In this document: positions 9,407 to 32,000 of the stretch, piece by piece | Layout of the letters: each line of letters starts with the position of its first letter | Position numbering within the stretch: the first letter of the stretch is position 1 | NCBI RefSeq assembly: GCF_000400465.1 | Contig: NW_008806303.1 | Span: 8,564 to 40,563 of the forward strand | DNA: 32,000 bases | DNA from: Wallemia ichthyophaga EXF-994 | Lineage: Eukaryota; Fungi; Basidiomycota | Direction of reading: 5' to 3' | The notes under the pieces: model-generated | What the model was told of the DNA's origin: nothing | What the model saw: the letters and a program-made list of their open reading frames with translations, nothing else | Databases searched by the model: none | Program-made: the position numbers and the translations under genes

Positions 9407-12400
9407 TTACATTTTGTTGAAGGAAGCCCTTGCTGATTCAAATGAGTAGCGCTTGCCTAGTTCAGGTGTAGGTTTAGATGAGTATGGTGTATACGAGATT
9501 GGCGGTGTAGGCGGTGGTGGCATAGAAGATATAGATTGTGAATGGTGATTACCATGCAGACTCCGGTTAGACGCTCTTAACGCTGAATCCCTATCTAAAC
9601 CGCTAGACATAGTCCTACTCCGCGCCCTTAGCACTTCTATATCTTCTTCCAATCGGCGATTATCCTCCTCTTGCATCTTGAGATCACGCTGATAACGCCT
9701 CTTCTCCACTTCAATCACATTTCTCGCCTCTTCCAGTTTCTTGTAGACATTCTCGCAATCCTTCTCCTTTATTTTGATTATTTGCTCAAGTTCGAGGAGA
9801 CGCTTATCTGTAGGAGTCCGCAGTCGAATTTCCAGCTCAGTGAGCTGTTCCGGAGTTAGACGAGACTTGATCTTTTCAGCTGACTTCATCTGGGTTGACA
9901 TGTTCGTGATCTCCATACGTGATTCTCTGAGCTGTCGGTCTGTTACGCGCTTCGCCTCTTCAAGGACGTGTACATGCTCAATCACTGTCTTGTCACTACG
10001 TGATCTGCTTAACAAATCTACCTCTTGCTGCGACGCTAGAAGGTCGTCCTTCATCACACTCAGTTTTGTCTCTAGATCACTGATCACTTCTTTGAGATTG
10101 TTCATATCGACTTTACGTGATTTGGATTCTTGGCTGCGACGATCTTCGACTGATTTAATATCATACGTTAGCACTTCATTGGATTGTCTTATGTTGTCGC
10201 GCTCTATTCTCAATTCGTCGCGCTCCTTCTCGAGGTCAAGACAGGCGTCTTCATAGTCATTTTGTTTCTTATGAGAAAGTTGCAACGCTCTTTGCAGTTG
10301 CTATTTGTCGTGATTAGCATATATTCAACTCCCAAAAGTCAAACTCACGTCGTTGTCCTGTTGTGATTGCCGCAAGGTTGATTCGAATTCAGTTTGCACG
10401 GCTAAGATGGATTCAAACTCGTTCATGATTCTTTGATTCTTTTCTTCACTTTGATGCAGTTGTCGCAAAGTCGAATCATACTCAGATTGCAGTCTTCTAA
10501 AAGACTCAAATTCACTCTTGATCCTCTCACTCTTGTTCTCACTTTGCTGTAATTGCGATTGTAGCAACTTGATGTCATTATTTTTCTCGACAGTACCCTG
10601 ACGCAGAGCATCATGCTGCAACACCTCCTCATCGTAGTCCTGCTTCAATCTCTCGTAGTTGTCTTTGTGGGCTTCTGCGTGGAGTGCCCTCTCCACGACT
10701 TCGTCGTAGTCTTGTTGCAGTCTTTCGTAGTTGACTTTGTAAGTTTCTGCTTCGACTGCTCTCTGAACCTCTTCATCGTAGTCTTGCTTCAATCTTTCAT
10801 AGCTGTCTTTATAGGCTTCTGCGTGGAGTGCTCTCTTCACCACTTCATCGTAGTCTTGTTGCAGTCTTTCGTAGTTGACTTTGTAAGTTTCTGCTTCGAC
10901 TGCTCTCTGAACCTCTTCATCGTAGTCCTGTTTCAATCTTTTGTAGTTGTCTTCGTAAGACTCTGCATCGAGCGCTCTCTTCTTGAGTGATTCAATTTCA
11001 CTCCTTGAGGTTTCAGCATCTTCTATAGATTGAGTTAGTTGCTCGCGCATTTCCTCCAATTCGTCGTCTCTTGTACTCTTAGAATGCTTAAATTGCAGCA
11101 CAACATCAGCCAACTCGCTTTCCACCTCCTGGCATCTCAAGGAGATATCGTCAAATCTTGTACTCTTCTCCTCGAATTCCTGCAGCTGATGGAGTGTTTC
11201 GGTGAGCTTACTGCGAAGTGCCTGCAACTCCCGTCCAAATTTGTCGCGCTCAGAGGATGTTACTGCAAGTCTGTGCTCATAATCATTGGCTAGTTCCTTC
11301 ATTTTACTATTGTCAGCCACTGTACTTTCCAAGCGCAAGATTTCGGTACTGGCAATATCAAAGTCGCTTCTTAGATCCTGGTGTCGAGATTCCGCCTCTT
11401 TCATTCCATTCAATGCCTTTTCGAGTTGGTTTTCTAGATCTTTGATGAAAGCACGGTGGTTGTCTATCTCTTCGCTCATCTCAACTTCGCGCGTCTGGAA
11501 TCTTTCTATGAGGTGCGAGTTTTGCAGTGATTGATCCCGTTCGGTTTCTAAGGCTGTTTGTGTACTCATAAGCAGCTTTTGTATGCGCCTCTGTTCAGAG
11601 TTATTCGCTTGCTGGTCTTTTACTATAAATTCAAGCCTCCTCTGCATGGATTGTAATTGATCCTGTCGAGCGTCAGTTATTGAGTATACTAAGTACTAAT
11701 TATTATACTTACTTCCCGCTTCCTGATCTCCTCTTCGGATCTCGTAGCAGTTAGGAGTGGTCTGACCTTATTAAAAACTCTCCACCATGCCCATTGCGAT
11801 AGGTTGTTAGATAACTCAGCGTTCCTATTGATAATTAGAGCAGCGTTGGCCTTATTTCTCAGCTTGTGTATAATCCTCCTCGTAATGAATCCTCTAGAAG
11901 ATGCTTGAATGGACGTGAACAAGTCGTAGAGAATGTTGTCCCTTCTCTCTTCCATTTCGGCGAGCACACCTGACTTGAAGAAGATCTTGCTATTACCGAT
12001 TCTGTATAGCTCTGAGTCCAGCTCCAAACTCTCGAGCATGCGCTGGCACACTTTCCTAGCATCCATATAGTGTACTGAGAGAACATTTGGAGTGAGGACA
12101 CCATACCTGGATCTGAACTCTGAGAACGGCAGTCTGTTTGGATAACCCAGTCTAGCAATTCTGATACCCTCCAGTACACCATTGCAGCGCAGCTGATCGA
12201 GTACAAGATTTACCTCAATTCTTCCCGGCTTCTTTATTGAGTTGGGTAGAATACATCTGACGAAATGTGGTTCCGTAGAGTTGAGTTGCCTCATCAACGC
12301 ATTTAGCTGCTCTTTATGTCTTTGTGCGACAGTTCTGAAAGCTCCACCTTTTCCTCCTCTGCTTGCTTTTCTGTCATCCGGTGTGTACTCTGAGAAAAGG

Positions 12401-14455
12401 TCTGCGATATATGCATCTGAGCTATTCGATAGAACTTTGGTGAGATGGTCATTAATTGGATCTTTGTTCTTCTCCAACCATGCTTCAGTATCGTATTCAA
12501 CTTTACCCGCATAATGCTGCACTATGAACCCTTCGTCTCCGAATTTAGACTTGCTGAATTTCAGTTTGCTGCCGTCATCTCTATTCATGCATAGCGATGT
12601 AAGTTTTTGAGTGAATGTCTGATCGTTAGCTTTTGGCATAATACACTCCTCATCCAAGCAGCTAAGAATACCAATTGGAGAAACACTCTCAATGAGATTG
12701 ATAGTGGGCTGAAGATCCAATCCAAAATTGACAAAGTTCCATTCGATGCCCTCTCTCTGATACTCTTCCTGCTCGAGCACAAACATGTGATGATTGAAGT
12801 ATTGTTGCAGACACTCATTAGTGTAGTTGATACATAGCTGCTCGAACGAGTTTTTCTTGAATATCTCAAATCCTGCTATATCAAGCACACCAATAAATGT
12901 GTTGCTTTCTGTAGCGCGGTCGAGGACTGTGTTAACTTTCTCAATCAGCTTGGAGAAATTCTTTTCGTAAATTGTTTTAGCGAGTGATGCAACTTCCGCT
13001 TTAGCTTGACTTTCAGAGCGTGATTGGATCACTGTTTCCTTGCCCGCCATCACGCGGGGGTTGATAATGGATTGCTCGAGCTCCTTAGAGGATGACAATC
13101 CTAAAACAAGGGAGAGTCGCTCAAGCGCATCCTTGTCTTCAATACGTGCCTGGCCCGATCTGTCTCCTTTGATGTCAATGTTGCCGAGGTGGAGGATCGC
13201 ACCAACGACTCTGAACAGATTCAGCTGCTCCTCCTTGTCGAACCCAAGTACATCCAGTGCACCAATGAGCATGTCCCATTCTTTCTCGTCATCTATACCA
13301 TCCACCTGCTTGCGCGTTTTGGAGAGGTAATTGTAGTGATTGATGTCGGCTGAAGGGATCTGCAAGGCATCGAGCAAATCTTGATCGGCACCGTTGAGGA
13401 AATGGTAAAAGACATGGAACGATCTTTCCTGATTAGATCTTGAGCTAACTCTGGACTTTTCAAGCAAATACCAATCTATGTGTGCACCGGCTATTTGACC
13501 TTTAGTGCTGAACTCAATGCGCACAAATTTACCGAATCTTGACGAGTTATTGTTTCTGACAGTTTGTGCATTACCAAAAGATTCAAGAATCGGGTTGGCT
13601 TGTAGGATCTGTCTTTCCAATGTGCCTAGACTTGTCATTGAGGATGATGGCGTTATAGACTGGCCCAAGGAAGGTGAATTTGGTACAGAAACTGGAGTTG
13701 AGAATGCGGTTGGTGTTCTAGACGGTGTACGAGGCTGTGTAGATCGTGACAAAGAGTCGACGCGTCCTGCTGAGTTGCTAGCTATTGAAGCGAGGTATTG
13801 AATTACTTTTTTTGTGTTCTCAGTTTTACCAGCACCTGATTCACCACTGGAGATTTTTTGTCAGATTGCAACTCCTCTATTCAATTGAACCCACGTAATC
13901 AGAACAGATTGATTTTCGCGCTCAGCCATCATATCATTCCAAGCTCTGTCAGTCACAGCAAAGATATGCGGCGCATTATCTTCTCTCCGTTTATTGCGAT
14001 AGGCTTGTACGTGCGCGTCTGTGTATATGGGCAGGTCACGATAAGGGTTTACCGCCACGAGGAAGAGGCCAGAGTAGGTGTAAATCAAATCAGAGCCATA
14101 TCTCGATCTGAGGTTGTGTACTACGGATGCTTCATTAAGAAATGTAAGTTCGGCGATATCGCTGACTTTATCAAATCGTGGCGGATTCTGCGGTGATAGC
14201 AAGTCACTCCGCATCGTTCTCGTCTGTGAATGACGCGTGAGTAGTGTAGATGAGATTAACCAAGAAATTAATCACCTCGCTGTTGCATACGACGTCCCAC
14301 TCTTCGCCATTCTCCTTGGCTACCCAGCCAGAGAGATAGCCCTCCTTGTGATCTGGCACCCACACGCGTTTCTTCTCTGCGAACTCAGCATTGGCGGCTG
14401 CATCTGCCAGGCTTATCTCTCTGTTAAACTTGGGCTTGAGTGGAGACCTCTGCAT
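9407..14455 (-). CDS. MYO1: Type II myosin heavy chain, full-length copy, 4 introns
   Basis: N-terminal SH3-like RVWVPDHKEGY, P-loop GESGAGKT, ILESFGNAQT, NSSRFGKF, LDIAGFE, QLRCNGVLEGIRI, IQ region, WWRVFNKVRPLL, then long coiled coil. Symbol follows the S. cerevisiae class II name. Confidence 0.92.
10622..10981 (-). repeat. Coding tandem repeat in myosin tail: 5 x 72 bp (24 aa), alternating A/B units (144-bp higher-order repeat)
   Basis: KRALDAESYEDNYKRLKQDYDEEV / QRAVEAETYKVNYERLQQDYDEVV / KRALHAEAYKDSYERLKQDYDEEV / QRAVEAETYKVNYERLQQDYDEVV / ERALHAEAHKDNYERLKQDYDEEV. Confidence 0.95.
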
Positions 14456-14611
14456 TTCGTTTCTTCCGTTTTTGTTGGTTTTAAGCAAGGGGTGGACGCG
14501 AGATAGGATAACGCAGACGCGTGTTATTACAAAATCCGGAATTTATAAATTTTAGATTTATTTTTCATTTACAAGTAAAAGAAACATGCGCGTGAGCGTG
14601 TATATCTGTGC

Positions 14612-15764
14612 TTACTGCGATATCTCATTGTTAGTTCGGTCTACGTTGGTGCGCAGCGCGTAGTCGCCATCGTTGGTGAGGTATCTAACCCAAGGCAGAG
14701 CTTGGTAGCCGCTCTTTTCAACAATCTTCAAATAGCGCACTTGTATGCCAGAGACCTATAGATACATTAGGCATTTGAGATGAGTGATATCACAACCAAC
14801 TTACAGTGAAATATGGAATTTCGAATTTAACCAAGATTGGACGTTTGGATTGTATATCATCTCCTTTCACACTAGGCAGCCCAAACTCGGCTCGAAGCAA
14901 GAACTCTTTTCCACCAGCCAGCTGCTTTATTTTCCAGATGAAACAACTCTGATCAGGCGCATAGCTGACTGATCCAGTCGCACTTCTAAATTTAGGGGTA
15001 TCAGCGTCATCTGGAACTGGAATAAGTATTTCAACGTTGTTTGCAGATGATCTCTTTTTGAAGTTTGCTTTTACTTTGACAGTGTATTCGACACGTGAGC
15101 CTGAATGATATTCGATACTTGCTTCAGCCCAGACAAGGGGTTTTACTGAAGTTGACAACCGATAGCTCATCAGCTCGAATTCACCGTCGGGTGGAATGAA
15201 AGAGATGGTTCTATCATTTTCAAACCTCGACAACCTCACGCACTGATGAAATTTGACATCCTCCATTTCAATACTCTTCCCTCTGTTTGTCCTGCCAGTA
15301 GTTTCGAACATGACTTTGTCGTTCAAACCGAGCCTCAACTCAGGCATTCCAGTGAGGAAGCATTTCATTTTGACGGCACCAAGAATCTCACTTCTAATGA
15401 CGTTACCAGAAGCGTTAACGAGCATATTTACAGACTCGACGACATCTAAGAAGACTTCGTTCTTGCGATAACGGATACCCTCACTACGCCAACTGACAGC
15501 GTTTGTGACAGCCATTGGAGGTCTAGCTTGAGATTCGAGCTTATAAGATTCCTGAGTAATGTACTCCTGTAGAATCTTTGATTCAGTTGTCTGTGGATGA
15601 CCATAGTCCATCATTTCATCGAAAAGTTCATAAATAATAACGAAATTGTCTCTAATGGATTCCTCTTCAAGTTCCTTGAAATATTCAGTAAAAACAGAAG
15701 CAAGTTTATGCAAGAAAAGGATAATTTCAGCTGCGTTTGAGTTGTTTTTAGAGAGAGCGAGTAT
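14612..15764 (-). pseudogene. APM1: 5'-truncated duplicate of AP-1 mu subunit (from ILALSKNN onward), no native start or promoter
   Basis: Identical to 19507-20659; begins abruptly at the duplication junction downstream of myosin tail sequence. Confidence 0.88.
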
Positions 15765-18700
15765 CGTAGTTGACTTTGTAAGTTTCTGCTTCGACTGCTC
15801 TCTGAACCTCTTCATCGTAGTCCTGTTTCAATCTTTTGTAGTTGTCTTCGTAAGACTCTGCATCGAGCGCTCTCTTCTTGAGTGATTCAATTTCACTCCT
15901 TGAGGTTTCAGCATCTTCTATAGATTGAGTTAGTTGCTCGCGCATTTCCTCCAATTCGTCGTCTCTTGTACTCTTAGAATGCTTAAATTGCAGCACAACA
16001 TCAGCCAACTCGCTTTCCACCTCCTGGCATCTCAAGGAGATATCGTCAAATCTTGTACTCTTCTCCTCGAATTCCTGCAGCTGATGGAGTGTTTCGGTGA
16101 GCTTACTGCGAAGTGCCTGCAACTCCCGTCCAAATTTGTCGCGCTCAGAGGATGTTACTGCAAGTCTGTGCTCATAATCATTGGCTAGTTCCTTCATTTT
16201 ACTATTGTCAGCCACTGTACTTTCCAAGCGCAAGATTTCGGTACTGGCAATATCAAAGTCGCTTCTTAGATCCTGGTGTCGAGATTCCGCCTCTTTCATT
16301 CCATTCAATGCCTTTTCGAGTTGGTTTTCTAGATCTTTGATGAAAGCACGGTGGTTGTCTATCTCTTCGCTCATCTCAACTTCGCGCGTCTGGAATCTTT
16401 CTATGAGGTGCGAGTTTTGCAGTGATTGATCCCGTTCGGTTTCTAAGGCTGTTTGTGTACTCATAAGCAGCTTTTGTATGCGCCTCTGTTCAGAGTTATT
16501 CGCTTGCTGGTCTTTTACTATAAATTCAAGCCTCCTCTGCATGGATTGTAATTGATCCTGTCGAGCGTCAGTTATTGAGTATACTAAGTACTAATTATTA
16601 TACTTACTTCCCGCTTCCTGATCTCCTCTTCGGATCTCGTAGCAGTTAGGAGTGGTCTGACCTTATTAAAAACTCTCCACCATGCCCATTGCGATAGGTT
16701 GTTAGATAACTCAGCGTTCCTATTGATAATTAGAGCAGCGTTGGCCTTATTTCTCAGCTTGTGTATAATCCTCCTCGTAATGAATCCTCTAGAAGATGCT
16801 TGAATGGACGTGAACAAGTCGTAGAGAATGTTGTCCCTTCTCTCTTCCATTTCGGCGAGCACACCTGACTTGAAGAAGATCTTGCTATTACCGATTCTGT
16901 ATAGCTCTGAGTCCAGCTCCAAACTCTCGAGCATGCGCTGGCACACTTTCCTAGCATCCATATAGTGTACTGAGAGAACATTTGGAGTGAGGACACCATA
17001 CCTGGATCTGAACTCTGAGAACGGCAGTCTGTTTGGATAACCCAGTCTAGCAATTCTGATACCCTCCAGTACACCATTGCAGCGCAGCTGATCGAGTACA
17101 AGATTTACCTCAATTCTTCCCGGCTTCTTTATTGAGTTGGGTAGAATACATCTGACGAAATGTGGTTCCGTAGAGTTGAGTTGCCTCATCAACGCATTTA
17201 GCTGCTCTTTATGTCTTTGTGCGACAGTTCTGAAAGCTCCACCTTTTCCTCCTCTGCTTGCTTTTCTGTCATCCGGTGTGTACTCTGAGAAAAGGTCTGC
17301 GATATATGCATCTGAGCTATTCGATAGAACTTTGGTGAGATGGTCATTAATTGGATCTTTGTTCTTCTCCAACCATGCTTCAGTATCGTATTCAACTTTA
17401 CCCGCATAATGCTGCACTATGAACCCTTCGTCTCCGAATTTAGACTTGCTGAATTTCAGTTTGCTGCCGTCATCTCTATTCATGCATAGCGATGTAAGTT
17501 TTTGAGTGAATGTCTGATCGTTAGCTTTTGGCATAATACACTCCTCATCCAAGCAGCTAAGAATACCAATTGGAGAAACACTCTCAATGAGATTGATAGT
17601 GGGCTGAAGATCCAATCCAAAATTGACAAAGTTCCATTCGATGCCCTCTCTCTGATACTCTTCCTGCTCGAGCACAAACATGTGATGATTGAAGTATTGT
17701 TGCAGACACTCATTAGTGTAGTTGATACATAGCTGCTCGAACGAGTTTTTCTTGAATATCTCAAATCCTGCTATATCAAGCACACCAATAAATGTGTTGC
17801 TTTCTGTAGCGCGGTCGAGGACTGTGTTAACTTTCTCAATCAGCTTGGAGAAATTCTTTTCGTAAATTGTTTTAGCGAGTGATGCAACTTCCGCTTTAGC
17901 TTGACTTTCAGAGCGTGATTGGATCACTGTTTCCTTGCCCGCCATCACGCGGGGGTTGATAATGGATTGCTCGAGCTCCTTAGAGGATGACAATCCTAAA
18001 ACAAGGGAGAGTCGCTCAAGCGCATCCTTGTCTTCAATACGTGCCTGGCCCGATCTGTCTCCTTTGATGTCAATGTTGCCGAGGTGGAGGATCGCACCAA
18101 CGACTCTGAACAGATTCAGCTGCTCCTCCTTGTCGAACCCAAGTACATCCAGTGCACCAATGAGCATGTCCCATTCTTTCTCGTCATCTATACCATCCAC
18201 CTGCTTGCGCGTTTTGGAGAGGTAATTGTAGTGATTGATGTCGGCTGAAGGGATCTGCAAGGCATCGAGCAAATCTTGATCGGCACCGTTGAGGAAATGG
18301 TAAAAGACATGGAACGATCTTTCCTGATTAGATCTTGAGCTAACTCTGGACTTTTCAAGCAAATACCAATCTATGTGTGCACCGGCTATTTGACCTTTAG
18401 TGCTGAACTCAATGCGCACAAATTTACCGAATCTTGACGAGTTATTGTTTCTGACAGTTTGTGCATTACCAAAAGATTCAAGAATCGGGTTGGCTTGTAG
18501 GATCTGTCTTTCCAATGTGCCTAGACTTGTCATTGAGGATGATGGCGTTATAGACTGGCCCAAGGAAGGTGAATTTGGTACAGAAACTGGAGTTGAGAAT
18601 GCGGTTGGTGTTCTAGACGGTGTACGAGGCTGTGTAGATCGTGACAAAGAGTCGACGCGTCCTGCTGAGTTGCTAGCTATTGAAGCGAGGTATTGAATTA

Positions 18701-19350
18701 CTTTTTTTGTGTTCTCAGTTTTACCAGCACCTGATTCACCACTGGAGATTTTTTGTCAGATTGCAACTCCTCTATTCAATTGAACCCACGTAATCAGAAC
18801 AGATTGATTTTCGCGCTCAGCCATCATATCATTCCAAGCTCTGTCAGTCACAGCAAAGATATGCGGCGCATTATCTTCTCTCCGTTTATTGCGATAGGCT
18901 TGTACGTGCGCGTCTGTGTATATGGGCAGGTCACGATAAGGGTTTACCGCCACGAGGAAGAGGCCAGAGTAGGTGTAAATCAAATCAGAGCCATATCTCG
19001 ATCTGAGGTTGTGTACTACGGATGCTTCATTAAGAAATGTAAGTTCGGCGATATCGCTGACTTTATCAAATCGTGGCGGATTCTGCGGTGATAGCAAGTC
19101 ACTCCGCATCGTTCTCGTCTGTGAATGACGCGTGAGTAGTGTAGATGAGATTAACCAAGAAATTAATCACCTCGCTGTTGCATACGACGTCCCACTCTTC
19201 GCCATTCTCCTTGGCTACCCAGCCAGAGAGATAGCCCTCCTTGTGATCTGGCACCCACACGCGTTTCTTCTCTGCGAACTCAGCATTGGCGGCTGCATCT
19301 GCCAGGCTTATCTCTCTGTTAAACTTGGGCTTGAGTGGAGACCTCTGCAT
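15748..19350 (-). CDS. Tail-truncated type II myosin duplicate (motor, IQ, ~280 aa of tail, ends ..YKVNYDTRSL*)
   Basis: Same promoter region, exons and introns as 10870-14455; reading frame crosses the junction into AP-1 mu DNA out of frame and stops at 15748-15750. Functional status unknown. Confidence 0.7.
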
Positions 19351-19506
19351 TTCGTTTCTTCCGTTTTTGTTGGTTTTAAGCAAGGGGTGGACGCGAGATA
19401 GGATAACGCAGACGCGTGTTATTACAAAATCCGGAATTTATAAATTTTAGATTTATTTTTCATTTACAAGTAAAAGAAACATGCGCGTGAGCGTGTATAT
19501 CTGTGC

Positions 19507-20857
19507 TTACTGCGATATCTCATTGTTAGTTCGGTCTACGTTGGTGCGCAGCGCGTAGTCGCCATCGTTGGTGAGGTATCTAACCCAAGGCAGAGCTTGG
19601 TAGCCGCTCTTTTCAACAATCTTCAAATAGCGCACTTGTATGCCAGAGACCTATAGATACATTAGGCATTTGAGATGAGTGATATCACAACCAACTTACA
19701 GTGAAATATGGAATTTCGAATTTAACCAAGATTGGACGTTTGGATTGTATATCATCTCCTTTCACACTAGGCAGCCCAAACTCGGCTCGAAGCAAGAACT
19801 CTTTTCCACCAGCCAGCTGCTTTATTTTCCAGATGAAACAACTCTGATCAGGCGCATAGCTGACTGATCCAGTCGCACTTCTAAATTTAGGGGTATCAGC
19901 GTCATCTGGAACTGGAATAAGTATTTCAACGTTGTTTGCAGATGATCTCTTTTTGAAGTTTGCTTTTACTTTGACAGTGTATTCGACACGTGAGCCTGAA
20001 TGATATTCGATACTTGCTTCAGCCCAGACAAGGGGTTTTACTGAAGTTGACAACCGATAGCTCATCAGCTCGAATTCACCGTCGGGTGGAATGAAAGAGA
20101 TGGTTCTATCATTTTCAAACCTCGACAACCTCACGCACTGATGAAATTTGACATCCTCCATTTCAATACTCTTCCCTCTGTTTGTCCTGCCAGTAGTTTC
20201 GAACATGACTTTGTCGTTCAAACCGAGCCTCAACTCAGGCATTCCAGTGAGGAAGCATTTCATTTTGACGGCACCAAGAATCTCACTTCTAATGACGTTA
20301 CCAGAAGCGTTAACGAGCATATTTACAGACTCGACGACATCTAAGAAGACTTCGTTCTTGCGATAACGGATACCCTCACTACGCCAACTGACAGCGTTTG
20401 TGACAGCCATTGGAGGTCTAGCTTGAGATTCGAGCTTATAAGATTCCTGAGTAATGTACTCCTGTAGAATCTTTGATTCAGTTGTCTGTGGATGACCATA
20501 GTCCATCATTTCATCGAAAAGTTCATAAATAATAACGAAATTGTCTCTAATGGATTCCTCTTCAAGTTCCTTGAAATATTCAGTAAAAACAGAAGCAAGT
20601 TTATGCAAGAAAAGGATAATTTCAGCTGCGTTTGAGTTGTTTTTAGAGAGAGCGAGTATGTAGAGGTTTGAGTACCTGATGTGCATGTAATTGACACCAT
20701 CCTTTGTAAAGCAAGGAGTTACAGTTTGTAGATCTTCTTCCATATCCAAGACTATTGGCATGAATCTATCGACGGTGGACGCGGGAATATCATCCTTATA
20801 AGACCTCTGTATTAGAGACTTCCCTTTCAAATCTAATATCGCGATTAATGAGGCCAT
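19507..20857 (-). CDS. APM1: Clathrin adaptor AP-1 complex mu (medium) subunit, one 3' intron
   Basis: MASLIAILDLKGKSLIQRSYKDD; IRDNFVIIYELFDEMMDYGHPQTTES; VSWRSEGIRYRKNEVFLDVVES; last exon VSGIQVRYLKIVEKSGYQALPWVRY. Confidence 0.96.
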
Positions 20858-27755: not shown

Positions 27756-28451
27756 ATGAAATCGATATTGAAGAATACGCAAGCGGAGCAACAGCATAGG
27801 GATGACCACGGGCTGACGTGGGACGAAGAGAACATAGCCGTCACTGAAGCGCAAAAAGACTCAACGATGAAAGTGACTGAGCCGTGAGTAGCGAGGTTTG
27901 AGTGCAGGAATGTTAGTAACACGGCTGCCCGCAGCAAAACGCCATACGTTAAGTACAATGCAGAGAGTAAGTAGATTGGAAGAGCACAGGACAAACACTC
28001 GTCTTATACACTCACACTCACAGCCGATACGGTGGAGAACATCAACGATATCCCTGGACTTACACTCGACAGCCACCGCTCACCCTCATCGCCTCCTTCT
28101 ACCAGCCCCAGCTCGAGATCGGCGTCGTTCAGTTTACCCCCTGAGCATATCGACGACGTCAGGTCAGAGCTCAGGGGCCAGCAGAGGATAGTCAATACCG
28201 GCACAGAAGATGAGCACGAGTATGGTGATGAGACTGAGCAGGATGTAGAGAAACACAAAGATTTCGAGAAAAAGAGGGGAAAGCACTAGTGAGTTTGGTC
28301 GTTTTGTGTGGTGTTAAATCTGTGAAATCTGACTCAAATAACTAGCTCAAACGAGGCAGAAGCTATGCGTAAAGCCGCAGCACTTATCGCAAAGGAAGAT
28401 GACGACGATGACAACAATCCGGTTACTAACGGTACTTCAAATTCGCACTAG
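27756..28451 (+). CDS. GLC8: Protein phosphatase 1 inhibitor-2 family protein, 3 introns
   Basis: MKSILK, LTWDEENIA, MKVTEP/KTPY, FEKKRGKHY/SNEA motifs of IPP-2; TAG 28449-28451. Confidence 0.9.
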
Positions 28452-28851
28452 TTGTGTTGCGGTCTGATCACCACTTGCGCTTCAGCTAGCGCTCTTGATC
28501 TTTAATCTGCCTCGTTTAAACCCCCCGGCATTCTATAATTCTCCTCTTTCCCGCTATGTTTATAAATCTTATCCTGGTCATGAACGCTTTATCATTAACG
28601 GCAGCATATCTATTTACGCTTTGCTCTTTGAGTCCATTACTGCTCTTCTTTTCGCTTCTTGATCAGTCCAATTTGTATGTCCTCGAATTGGCAGAAAATT
28701 TGAGATCGCAGCATGACACACTTGGGAGCACATATTATGCATTCAAAAAGAGATAAATCAAATTTGATGTAAGTGCACGCGCATTTAAAGCTCTTAAAAA
28801 CTAGCCCAAGGCCAAAATTCATTAAAATTTAAAACTTTCATACAAGGTCAC

Positions 28852-28857
28852 TATATA
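28852..28857 (+). promoter_or_regulatory. TATA-like element ~30 bp upstream of the reconstructed pre-insertion tRNA start
   Basis: TATATA at -34..-29 relative to G28886 of the left AGGT; the uninterrupted tRNA copy has TATATAA at -30..-24. Confidence 0.4.
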
Positions 28858-28888
28858 GATTTACTTGAAATAGCTGATGCTATCAGGT

Positions 28889-29391
28889 TGTAAACGTCTT
28901 GATCTTTGTGAGGTGAAATTTTGCACAAAGGGCAAGGCGCTGAGATTATTAAGAGAATTAAGTCTGAAATGTATAAGAGTAAAAGTAATCGTTTAAATAG
29001 TTTAGATTTGGAGTCTTCTCCTTGTGGTCACTCAACCCATTGTCCTCCATGTTCCTGCTTTACGCCCGCCGTCCAACCTGATCGGGGAGATACACATCCT
29101 CATAAGGTCTGTAAGGATACGGCCCTCTACGCAAAGGACTAGGATCACCCCCAGGAACCTCGTCCAACTATAAATAGAACAGAGAACAATGAGAATAAAG
29201 AACAATGAAGATTATGCATGATTATGCACGAGAACAATGAAGATAACGAAACAATGGGAATAAAACCTAGAATTCTAAACTATTTACACAACTACTTTAA
29301 TATTGATACATCTTAGACTTCATTCTTTTATTAATCTCAGCGCCTTGCCCTTTGTGTGCAGTTCAACCTCACAAAGATCAAGACGTTTACA
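28889..29391. mobile_element. 503-bp non-coding element with TGT...ACA termini, 118-bp terminal inverted repeats and 4-bp TSD AGGT (MITE-like, Ginger-like ends; solo LTR not excluded)
   Basis: 28889-29006 aligns without gaps to the reverse complement of 29274-29391 (99/118 by manual count, first 26 bp identical); AGGT at 28885-28888 and 29392-29395. Confidence 0.85.
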
Positions 29392-29392
29392 A

Positions 29393-29473
29393 GGTCTCTT
29401 AACTCAGTTGGTTAGAGTGTGGAGCTAATACTAGAATACTCCAAAGTCGCAGGTTCGAGCCCTGCAGGGACCA
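29393..29473 (+). tRNA. tRNA-Ile(AAT) with 7-nt intron at 37/38 (29431-29437)
   Basis: Cloverleaf: GGTCTCT/AGGGACC acceptor, ACTC/GAGT D stem, TGGAG/CTCCA anticodon stem with CT-AAT-A, GCAGG-TTCGAGC-CCTGC T arm; TTTT at 29479-29482. Confidence 0.93.
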
Positions 29474-29593
29474 AAATATTTTGCTTCTTCACATTATGTT
29501 TTGAACGACAGTGTCCTGCTATTGTTTATATGTTCGTAGCACATTCACACAACGCTCGCAAATTAGCAAAAAAGCGTGAAATATTATGTACAG

Positions 29594-29666
29594 AGGCATT
29601 TAGGATTAAAAATTAAACCATCTGACGACGAATCAGACATCGGAGGTGAGAATCCTCTTGGGCCCA
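29594..29666 (+). pseudogene. Degenerate tRNA-Arg(ACG)
   Basis: 73-nt cloverleaf spacing; intact TCTGA/TCAGA anticodon stem around ACG and GGAGG/CCTCT T stem; broken acceptor pairs, D-loop GG replaced by AA, T loop TGAGAAT; TTTTT at 29673-29677. Confidence 0.7.
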
Positions 29667-30994
29667 CTTTCCTTTTTGTCCGAACAATCGTAATCCTCAT
29701 TGAATAACTACCCTGTTTTGACGCTACATGCATTCCAGATGCACTTATTCCTGAAAAAATTTCGTCAAGAAATTTTCGTTTGCTTAGCTGTGTCAGAGAT
29801 CAGCTTATTTCAAAAGCATGTTTGTAGATAAGCAAACAAAATGCAGTATATGAGATACAAAGGATTAAATTACAGTAGTGAGTAGAGATAGTATTCGAAT
29901 TTGTGTTGTATTCGGTTGTATTTGATTGTCTTCGTTGCATTCGAAAGTCAAACTAACCAGTCATTTTACTGTTCAACTGAGCCACAAATGTGGCTGAACC
30001 AATATTTGGCTCAGTTTCACACCAATATGTACCGCAGCGCGTTATTGTTTAACTGATGTCACAAACTTCTGATCCGATTTAAACTCTACTTCTACAGCTT
30101 TGAATTCTCGAAATGTACTGGCCCGAAGCCAAATCCCTCTATTCAGAAATGGGATCTCCTTAAATTTCTTTGTATAATTTACATTCAATAATTGTGTAAT
30201 GTTCCGGTATGAGATGTATTTGGAATGCTGAAGATGCTACAAGAATAATGCTTTTGCGAAGTTGCTCAATGCGCTTAACTTCTCACATACTGGGTCATTT
30301 GCAAGGTGAGCTAAGTACTATTGCTATTCATGGATTCCATATATACCACAATACATCTTAAAATCGTTCTGCCTTTTCAAAAACTCCTCCACAAGCCGTC
30401 ATTGAAGGATAAAAACTGTAGTTTTGCAGCTTTCAATATTTACTGAAGATAAATCGGTTAATTGTTACAATTTCATTCACTCGATTGAATAGAGGTGATC
30501 AACTCAGCTAGCAAAACATCAATAAGTTGAAAAAACCAAACACTGACATGACATACAATGTCTCACTGTGCAATTTTACCTATGTTGAGCTGGTCAACAC
30601 ACCAGCTTGAATACTGAATCATTAATTACATAAATGGTAACGTGAGCCTGATCAGTACACTATTCAACCCGATAAAATCAAAAAAAAATTGGTAAATTGC
30701 CGTTGATAAAACTGGTTATGTTTACGTGAACTCAAATTATGTTTGATTAATTGGTTGAGCGTCAAAGTTCTCCTCATTGCGAAGTAGTAACAGTAAAATC
30801 AAATGCATAGTTAAAGCGATACAAAGTAATAATTGCGCCCATTTATATTTCTTAGGTTGGTATTTTGTATTCCTGGGACACTCATTTGTATATACAGCGT
30901 TTTTTCGTTTGCTTCGTAAAGATTTATTAGAATTAAGTCTGTCTAGCTGGAGGCCGGGCAGATATTACAGGCTTCATTGAGAGTTCGTGAAATA

Positions 30995-31108
30995 TTTAGG
31001 GGTTGAGAATTCGTATAATGCTTGTATGTTCTGTAAGTTGCGTAGCATCGCTCCTAATTCGAACCTCATTCCGAGTACGATCACTTTTCTCCGTAATGTC
31101 GATCTTGC
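30995..31108 (-). pseudogene. Decayed coding remnant B of an unidentified family
   Basis: ARSTLRRKVIVLGMRFELGAMLRNLQNIQALYEFSTPK, flanked by in-frame stops; homologous to 31716-31830. Confidence 0.45.
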
Positions 31109-31715
31109 TTGCTCTCATATACTTCACAGATAAAAATCATGTGTGCTTTCGTATCATCCACCTTGCACAATGATGAATAATTTTCAACAAAATGACTTGA
31201 TTTTCATCGCGTGGTAGGTACATTGACTGGGTTTCAAATTACGTGATAAATCTTATCTGTCAAAAAGCGTCTGATACTGGCTCATTTGTCTGAACTGTGA
31301 GAACGATACATTTTTCGAAAATTTGCTTGAGTGATTAATTGATTTATATAGGTTTGATGGAGAAACATTTCTTATTTCCATGACTTTCGATAGTTCTTTT
31401 TGGATTTGCATTATTTGATAAAATTACAGGTAAATACAATTAAACATTTTTTTTTTTGTTGCTAACTACGAAAGGTACATAGTCTTCAGTGAAATTTTGT
31501 TTGGACAAATGATTGTGTATATGATGATGAAATCTGAATATATTGTTAGAACGATACATGTTTGAGACTGCGTTTTTCAATACTTCTTAAAGCATGAGGA
31601 GTCAAAGGGGGTGCTGAATTTACTGGAAGCGTTTCTTAACTAGCGTCGTAATTTGTAAATTGTTGTTGGTTCTCAATTACATTGAACCACCGGAGTATCT
31701 TTTGTACGTAGTTAA

Positions 31716-31830
31716 TTGCGGTTTGAAGAACTCGTAAAGGACTTGTAGAGAGTGCGTTTCTGAGTATTGGACCTAATTCGAACCGGATATTGATTTTGGT
31801 AATCTTTCTTCTTAATGTGATTCTGGCCAT
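31716..31830 (-). pseudogene. Decayed coding remnant A of an unidentified family (frameshifted relative to B)
   Basis: MARITLRRKITKINIRFELGPILRNA then, after a 2-nt indel, LQVLYEFFKPQ. Confidence 0.45.
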
Positions 31831-31952
31831 TATATGTTTTCTGCGTATGAAGATTCTATGCGAGATGGTATACTCTGTGACACATGCACTGCATTTAGGT
31901 GGAGGGTGTATTGTGTAGAATGTAAAATTTGAGAGTCAAAACGATGTAGGAT

Positions 31953-31959
31953 TATATAA
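31953..31959 (+). promoter_or_regulatory. TATA-like element upstream of second tRNA-Ile
   Basis: TATATAA at -30..-24 from the tRNA start at 31983. Confidence 0.45.
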
Positions 31960-31982
31960 GGTATAAGATTTCGATTCTCCAA

Positions 31983-32000
31983 GGTCTCTTAACTCAGTTG
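31983..32000 (+). tRNA. Second tRNA-Ile(AAT)-type gene, 5' end only (cut by window edge)
   Basis: GGTCTCTTAACTCAGTTG is identical to 29393-29410; anticodon not visible. Confidence 0.75.

Follow-up and report, generated by a model that had tools for sequence, protein, structure and literature searches.

A putative non-autonomous inverted-repeat transposon at the mature 5' boundary of a tRNA-Ile gene in Wallemia ichthyophaga

Within a 32,000-nucleotide stretch of the Wallemia ichthyophaga EXF-994 genome (contig NW_008806303.1, positions 8,564 to 40,563; referred to here as the window), a 503-bp element with long inverted ends lies directly against the first bases of a tRNA-Ile gene. This element is, we conclude, probably a single copy of a short cut-and-paste (class II) transposon, non-autonomous and of the miniature inverted-repeat transposable element (MITE) type, in a basidiomycete-like nuclear genome. 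This assignment follows from the combination of long inverted ends, a direct repeat exactly at the boundary, conserved TGT...ACA termini, small size, and the absence of coding sequence. As it stands, it is a well-formed, ordinary MITE-like element in a suggestive place, and its novelty is unproven.

Boundaries and target-site duplication

Direct reading of the sequence gave an element that starts with TGTAAACG and ends with CGTTTACA, with TGT...ACA termini and TGTAA at both ends (Table 1). This agrees with the original prediction, which had proposed a 503-bp element at these coordinates flanked by AGGT target-site duplications (TSDs). At the left junction, ...gatgctatc-AGGT is followed by TGTAAACGTC; at the right junction, GACGTTTACA is followed by AGGT and ctcttaac.... 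Read further inward, the left end is TGTAAACGTCTTGATC and the right end is GATCAAGACGTTTACA, which continues outward into AGGT-ctcttaactcag. The two AGGT copies are positioned exactly at the ends of the inverted repeat, and the chance of such a 4-bp match between flanks is ~1/256.

Other TSDs fit less well. An 8-9-bp duplication, as made by hAT/Mutator elements, was rejected because the flanks contain no such match, and TA, TWA or TTAA duplications were rejected because the flanks differ. Formally, the junctions can also be read as a 2-bp GG duplication around an element that ends in TTGT...ACAA, a reading that requires two extra coincidences.

A 9-mer, TACAAGGTC, composed of the last four bases of the element, the TSD and a C, recurs at 28841-28849, 44 bp upstream of the insertion and just before the native TATA-like box. 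This recurrence could be due to chance (post hoc P ~0.03, roughly estimated), to the footprint of an old excision, or to a motif that resembles the target.

Terminal inverted repeats

A repeat finder reported inverted arms at 28888-29009 and 29271-29392 (122 nt, 84% complementary, 261 nt apart), which constitute the sole long inverted repeat of the 32-kb window. In an ungapped alignment, 101/121 positions of the arms are identical (83.5%), with no indels. The terminal inverted repeats (TIRs) had been predicted to be about 84% identical with a perfect outer 26 bp, and both values hold; the predicted length of 118 bp does not, since the arms measure 121-122 bp.

Identity between the arms is unevenly distributed, with perfect blocks at TIR positions 1-26 and 36-60. 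When the same number of mismatches was placed randomly, a perfect terminal run of at least 26 had P = 0.005, and two perfect runs of at least 25 had P = 0.001 (permutation). Such clustering of mismatches outside two perfect blocks is what would be expected of ends bound by a transposase. The 26-nt terminus itself, with up to 3 mismatches allowed, has exactly 2 matches in the window and none in 100 shuffles.

The TIR arms make up 48% of the element, and as a single strand the element is predicted to fold into one long hairpin (-105.6 kcal/mol, z = -14.6 vs shuffles). Each TIR also holds a small internal palindrome, CTTTGTG...CACAAAG.

Core and coding capacity

The unique core between the arms consists of a G+C-rich segment at ~29030-29165 followed by an A-rich segment. 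From 29182 to 29260 it contains 4-5 imperfect direct copies of GAACAATGA(A/G)(G)AT/A. Two internal motifs pointed out by the original prediction, TATAAATA at 29169 and AATAAA at 29194, are found at those positions. The core repeats and the TIR palindrome are possible protein-binding sites, and the motifs AACAAT and ACAAAG resemble HMG-box sites.

The longest stop-to-stop frame of the element is 76 codons. No Pfam domain was detected in its own frames, and its ten stop-to-stop frames, concatenated and compared with 5.8 billion proteins, gave no match at E <= 1. The element had been described as lacking a transposase open reading frame (ORF), and these searches bear this out: its frames have neither a Pfam domain nor a database homologue. 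The window likewise showed no signal of reverse transcriptase, integrase, gag, or transposase. Sequence, repeat and ORF analyses all support the predicted non-coding TIR element with a target-site duplication. Of the traits by which MITEs are recognized, the element has TIRs, a TSD flanking the TIRs, and small size without coding capacity; for a further such trait, multiple copies that share the termini, the window offers this one copy.

The occupied tRNA-Ile gene and its reconstructed empty site

To the right of the element lies a tRNA-Ile gene that is intact (Table 1). Manual reading of the gene shows an acceptor stem of 7 bp and the anticodon AAT at 29427-29429. One base beyond the anticodon on its 3' side, in the canonical place, is an intron of 7 nt (29431-29437). 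The B box (GGTTCGAGCCC) is good, and 9 nt downstream there is a T4 run. ARAGORN, run in bacterial mode without intron handling, reported no tRNA anywhere in the window and so misses this intron-bearing gene; tRNA-based checks in this genome should use eukaryotic searches that allow for introns. At a permissive threshold, Rfam reported nothing besides tRNA-Ile between 27600 and 32000. The AGGT duplication spans positions -1 to +3 of the tRNA, at the mature 5' boundary. This is the register that had been predicted, and it is confirmed by the sequence together with the Rfam tRNA start.

Joining the flanks with one AGGT reconstructs an empty site of ...CACTATATAGATTTACTTGAAATAGCTGATGCTATCAGGTCTCTTAACTCAG..., also written ...GCTGATGCTATCAGGTCTCTTAACTCAG.... 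In this site the tRNA start is preceded by a TATATA motif at -34, and A+T makes up 70% of the -40 to -20 interval. Because the join yields a normal tRNA upstream region, it supports insertion as the direction of the event. In the occupied gene, the -40 to -20 interval now consists of TIR sequence that is 50% A+T and has no TATA-like motif. The claim that insertion regenerates an intact tRNA gene consequently stands for the coding sequence but fails for the upstream region, because the native TATA-like region has been displaced by ~507 bp.

Given this loss, the insertion site is not necessarily harmless, and expression of the occupied tRNA-Ile gene may be altered by the upstream displacement. 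Some fungi require an upstream TATA-like element for transcription by RNA polymerase III (Pol III). The TATA-like boxes at 28851-28858 (~-34 in the empty site) and at 31953-31959 (-30 at a second tRNA-Ile gene) hint that such an element may be used at tRNA genes of this fungus.

The second tRNA-Ile gene and the intergenic spacer

The second tRNA-Ile gene, the only other tRNA gene in the window, begins 2,590 bp after the first. Its 5' end, CAAGGTCTC..., is the same as that of the first copy, and a 21-nt stretch, CAAGGTCTCTTAACTCAGTTG, is identical to 29390-29410. No element precedes it; of the two identical potential targets in the window, one is occupied and one is empty. It has TATATAA at -30 and an upstream interval of 70% A+T, comparable to the reconstructed site of the first copy.

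The spacer between the two tRNA-Ile copies (29474-31982, ~2.5 kb) is 35% G+C and contains no ORF of at least 70 codons. A six-frame Pfam scan of the spacer revealed no remnants of transposable element proteins, and there was no Rfam signal either. An ORF-less spacer of this length is unusual for a gene-dense window, and it may be decayed repeat DNA.

Searches for further copies and relatives

When the whole element was compared with the masked window by sensitive blastn, the best E value was 0.56, i.e., there was no further copy. The terminal 20-mer had 0 matches in JGI metagenome contigs, GTDB genome contigs, and IMG/VR, collections that do not include the source genome. The 26-nt 5' half of the tRNA matched five metagenome contigs, all of which carry bacterial or organellar tRNA(CAT) and are irrelevant here.

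The ARG5,6 protein encoded in the window has 60-66% identity to many Basidiomycota proteins; its closest match, at 81-82% identity, comes from two ENA metagenome assemblies. Two ORFs of the window had no exact match in the protein collection. The syntenic ENA contigs of the closest relative, L001 and L002, stop 93-128 bp past the ARG5,6 stop codon, short of the tRNA, and neither contig has similarity to the element. These two independent assemblies of the relative (32% G+C) both break after this short stretch (4890-4982 of L001 and 6062-6189 of L002), in the way that contigs end at repeats. In L002 the final 17 nt, TGTAAATCGTCATAACC, are faintly like the TIR start, TGTAAACGTCTTGATC; the match is too short to judge.

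Genomic surroundings

The window is an ordinary gene-dense stretch of fungal chromosome with housekeeping genes. It encodes a dynamin-like protein, an amino-acid permease, the NADH-dehydrogenase 24-kDa subunit, a ubiquitin hydrolase, myosin II, an AP-complex mu subunit, Utp12, a cofilin/twinfilin-like protein, and ARG5,6. Most of the gap from ARG5,6 to the element is occupied by an unannotated GLC8/IPP-2-like gene (Table 1), so the original upstream intergenic region of the tRNA was only ~430 bp.

Table 1. Positions of the element, its parts and the adjoining features in the window
Feature	Position	Strand	Description
GLC8/IPP-2-like (protein-phosphatase-inhibitor-2-like) gene	27780-28450, about	+	intron-containing, unannotated; Pfam IPP-2 E = 3.5e-7
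CTATATAG, presumed native TATA-like upstream element	28851-28858	+	~-34 in empty site; now ~540 bp from gene
Left TSD copy AGGT	28885-28888		joined to original tRNA upstream flank; identical to 29392-29395
Putative non-autonomous TIR element, TGTAAACG...CGTTTACA	28889-29391		503 bp, non-coding
Left TIR	28889-29009	+	121 bp; perfect blocks 28889-28914 (26-bp terminus) and 28924-28948
Unique core	29010-29270		261 bp
Right TIR	29271-29391	-	121 bp; final 26 bp, 29366-29391, exact reverse complement of 28889-28914
Right TSD copy AGGT	29392-29395		GGT = tRNA bases +1 to +3
tRNA-Ile(AAU) gene, intact	29393-29473	+	Rfam RF00005, 54.9 bits vs gathering score 29
Second tRNA-Ile start	31983-32000	+	18 bases, cut by window end; AGGT at -1 to +3; paralogous empty target

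Elsewhere in the window, 10869-15764 and 15764-20659 form a perfect (100%) tandem duplication whose units, 4,896 bp each, lie head to tail. The repeated sequence comprises the motor-domain part of a myosin II heavy-chain gene (ORFs 11689-13752 and 16584-18647) and part of an AP-complex mu-subunit gene, with chimeric frames at the junction. Either the assembly produced this duplication as an artefact, or the segment was duplicated very recently. In addition, a 72-bp (24-codon) tandem repeat of ~5 units, 75-92% identical, lies at 10623-10982 within the coiled-coil tail ORF 10325-11647 and has the motif ...YKxNYERLxQDYDEEV....

Discussion

Placement among DNA transposons

The termini, TIR length, and TSD size of the element point to the Ginger elements, whose transposase is a Gypsy-integrase-like DDE enzyme with an H2C2 zinc finger, related to the integrases of the Ty3/gypsy clade. 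Both Ginger groups have 5'-TGTNR termini. In Ginger1, known in 2010 from four animal species only, the TIRs measure 40-270 bp and the TSD is strictly 4 bp, namely CCGG (75%) or CCGT/ACGG (24%). The TIRs of Ginger2/TDD measure 50-180 bp, and its TSD of 4 bp (5 bp in TDD-4/5) arises at an AT-rich RTATAY target (Bao, Kapitonov & Jurka 2010; PMC2836005). A later compilation gives TSDs of 4 bp for Ginger1, 4-5 bp for Ginger2, and 6 bp for Polinton and IS3EU/GingerRoot (PMC10045372). All three structural hallmarks of Ginger are found here, namely TGTAA termini, 121-bp TIRs, and a 4-bp TSD, and the hallmarks on which the original prediction relied agree with the published description (PMC2836005).

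In contrast, the target of the element, c-AGGT-c at a tRNA 5' end, is unlike the CCGG/CCGT of Ginger1 and the RTATAY of Ginger2; this Ginger preference is a trend in animal families rather than a strict definition, and a single insertion is compared with it here. In addition, the element is known without a transposase. Overall, it looks like a Ginger-type element, and like Ginger2/TDD more than Ginger1, as a structural resemblance and not as demonstrated membership.

The original prediction knew of no tRNA-targeted Ginger-like family in fungi; a wider reading, that fungi have no Ginger-like family, needs correction. A Ginger2 vestige was reported in the basidiomycete Malassezia globosa, and non-autonomous Ginger2/TDD copies exist (PMC2836005). 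Furthermore, elements with an rve domain that were termed 'Ginger' were classed as ubiquitous in fungi (PMC5751038). That survey leaves tRNA unmentioned, and the Ginger paper mentions tRNA 0 times (PMC2836005).

Two other groups share some of these traits. Dada is a group of DNA transposons whose insertions are specific to multicopy genes for small RNAs, tRNA-Ile genes of Perkinsus marinus among them (Kojima & Jurka 2013; PMC3706591), so that redundant genes serve as safe sites. However, Dada elements have no TIRs, only short sub-terminal inverted repeats, their TSDs are 6-7 bp, and their insertion splits the RNA gene (PMC3706591). The element described here has 121-bp TIRs, a 4-bp TSD, and a whole tRNA coding sequence next to it, and Dada membership was rejected on these grounds. 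IS481EU elements also have TGT...ACA ends, and some of their families make 4-bp TSDs. They differ from the element in that their TIRs are mostly <50 bp, as opposed to 121 bp, their TSDs come in discrete lengths (4, ~15 and ~25 bp), and they are known from parabasalids only (PMC10045372).

Transposon, solo LTR or local palindrome

Several observations weigh against a MITE of this type. A single copy was found in the window and none in the collections searched, whereas the usual proof of a transposon family is multicopy status; no transposase is seen for the element; the target c-AGGT-c fits neither Ginger preference; and the second tRNA-Ile gene, which has the same AGGT site, is unoccupied. In addition, a solo long terminal repeat (LTR) of the Ty3/gypsy type would equally be ~500 bp long, end in TGT...ACA, have a 4-bp TSD, and sit beside a tRNA gene.

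Such a solo LTR would have been left by LTR-LTR recombination of a Ty3/gypsy-like retrotransposon next to the tRNA. The TSD falls inside the 3-6 bp range of LTR elements and retroviruses (PMC10045372), the length is typical of an LTR, the internal TATAAATA and AATAAA motifs would suit one, and the fungal tRNA-adjacent elements tabulated in PMC5911963 are all LTR retrotransposons (Ty3/gypsy, except for the Ty1-copia elements Ty1, Ty2, and Ty4). However, fungal Ty3-like elements insert upstream of the Pol III start and not across +1 (PMC5911963), and no remnants of reverse transcriptase, integrase or gag are present in the window. The internal motifs do not give a U3-R-U5 layout either: AATAAA follows the TATA motif by only 18 bp and would therefore precede any transcript start. 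The terminal inverted repeats of LTRs normally measure a few to ~20 bp, far short of 121-bp arms that take up nearly half of the element. The element thus has the TG...CA ends and a TSD within the 4-6 bp of a solo LTR, but not the short inverted termini with an asymmetric body, and we regard this origin as improbable. We hold it very much less probable still that the structure was never mobile and formed where it stands, as a local inverted duplication or palindrome with a coincidental AGGT match. The failure to find a second copy in the window or in the three collections searched would suit such an origin. On the other hand, a 4-bp direct repeat marks the exact limits of the inverted repeat, whose ends are canonical TGT...ACA, the termini are conserved well past the remainder of the arms, and excising the element restores a normal upstream region and tRNA.

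Chance or targeting at the tRNA gene

If the element is a MITE, its position still has to be explained, and here the alternatives concern the targeting claim rather than the identity of the element. We lean slightly toward a passive location, in which a MITE family with no preference for Pol III genes happened to fall, or to survive, at a tRNA boundary, because tRNA genes are nucleosome-poor and a gene-dense genome offers few neutral sites. There is one insertion, and the neighboring tRNA-Ile gene with an identical AGGT is empty. The window is gene-dense with housekeeping genes, and the tRNA-adjacent elements tabulated in PMC5911963 include no TIR DNA transposon. However, a TSD straddling -1 to +3 would be rare at random (a rough estimate of 1e-3 to 1e-4 per surviving intergenic insertion), and this is the sole TIR element in the window. 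Active targeting, the reading put forward in the original prediction, would bring the family to the 5' edge of tRNA (Pol III) genes, for instance through an integrase-like transposase that contacts TFIIIB or TFIIIC in the manner of Ty3 integrase. It seems to us rather unlikely, although the precise register at the mature 5' end and the integrase-type termini and TSD speak for it. Precedents exist in Ty3/gypsy-clade integrases at Pol III genes and in Dada at tRNA genes. Pol III-gene targeting has evolved repeatedly among Ty3/gypsy-clade integrases (PMC5911963), and because Ginger transposases are related to these integrases, the idea of tRNA targeting is biologically plausible. Against it, there is one insertion with an empty paralogous site, the finding was selected because of the tRNA coincidence, and removal of the native -30 TATA-like region is not obviously harmless.

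The register is also unlike that of any known Pol III-targeted element, none of which straddles +1 (PMC5911963). According to that review, known insertions lie 1-10 bp upstream of the transcription start site (TSS), which is itself ~10 bp before the mature tRNA end, or else are separated from the downstream mature coding sequence by 2 bp or more. Fungal Ty3-like elements insert 1-10 bp ahead of the Pol III start or leave 6-30 bp between themselves and the coding sequence. The Pol III-targeted Ty3/gypsy elements (Ty3, Tj1, Tyl3/Ylt1/Tyl6, Tca8, and DGLT-A), for which TFIIIB tethering of integrase is described (PMC5911963), resemble the element in having TGT...ACA ends, a short integrase-type TSD, and a position immediately 5' of the tRNA. 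They differ in having direct long repeats and replicating through RNA, whereas the element has inverted repeats, and in inserting 1-10 bp upstream of the start or 6-33 bp upstream of the mature coding sequence. Their hosts in PMC5911963 are ascomycete yeasts or social amoebae, with no basidiomycete among them. The more specific proposal, that a basidiomycete lineage harbors a TIR-bearing, probably integrase-type (Ginger-like) cut-and-paste family whose members home to the mature 5' boundary of tRNA genes, is, in our estimate, decidedly unlikely. Our analysis neither strengthens nor refutes the targeting hypothesis.

Possible course of the insertion

For a transposon of the kind we favor, the insertion could have proceeded as follows. 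An autonomous relative at another place in the genome would provide a DDE transposase in trans. This enzyme would bind the conserved TIR blocks 1-26 and 36-60, cut the target at AGGT with a 4-bp stagger, and join the 3' ends of the TGT...ACA element to it. Gap repair would then yield AGGT on both sides. The insertion landed between the GLC8/IPP-2-like gene and the tRNA-Ile gene, exactly at the mature 5' boundary of the tRNA. Judged from this single copy, tethering to the Pol III machinery, the open chromatin of tRNA genes, and the survival of a tolerated insertion in a gene-dense genome are all possible reasons for the position.

Implications

The 26-bp terminus of the element is useful as a genome-wide query, and displacement of the -30 TATA-like region raises the question of whether the occupied tRNA-Ile copy is still expressed. 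If the targeting hypothesis is true, the family would represent, among DNA transposons, the equivalent of the Ty3-style targeting of Pol III genes, and it would be unlike Dada in enzyme type, end structure, and insertion register. It would link two routes to Pol III genes, the TFIIIB tethering of Ty3/gypsy elements and the recognition of RNA-gene sequence by Dada, and would place this link in Basidiomycota, a phylum for which the review of such elements (PMC5911963) contains no tRNA-targeted element. Finally, it would support the proposed kinship of Ginger transposases and LTR integrases at the level of target choice.

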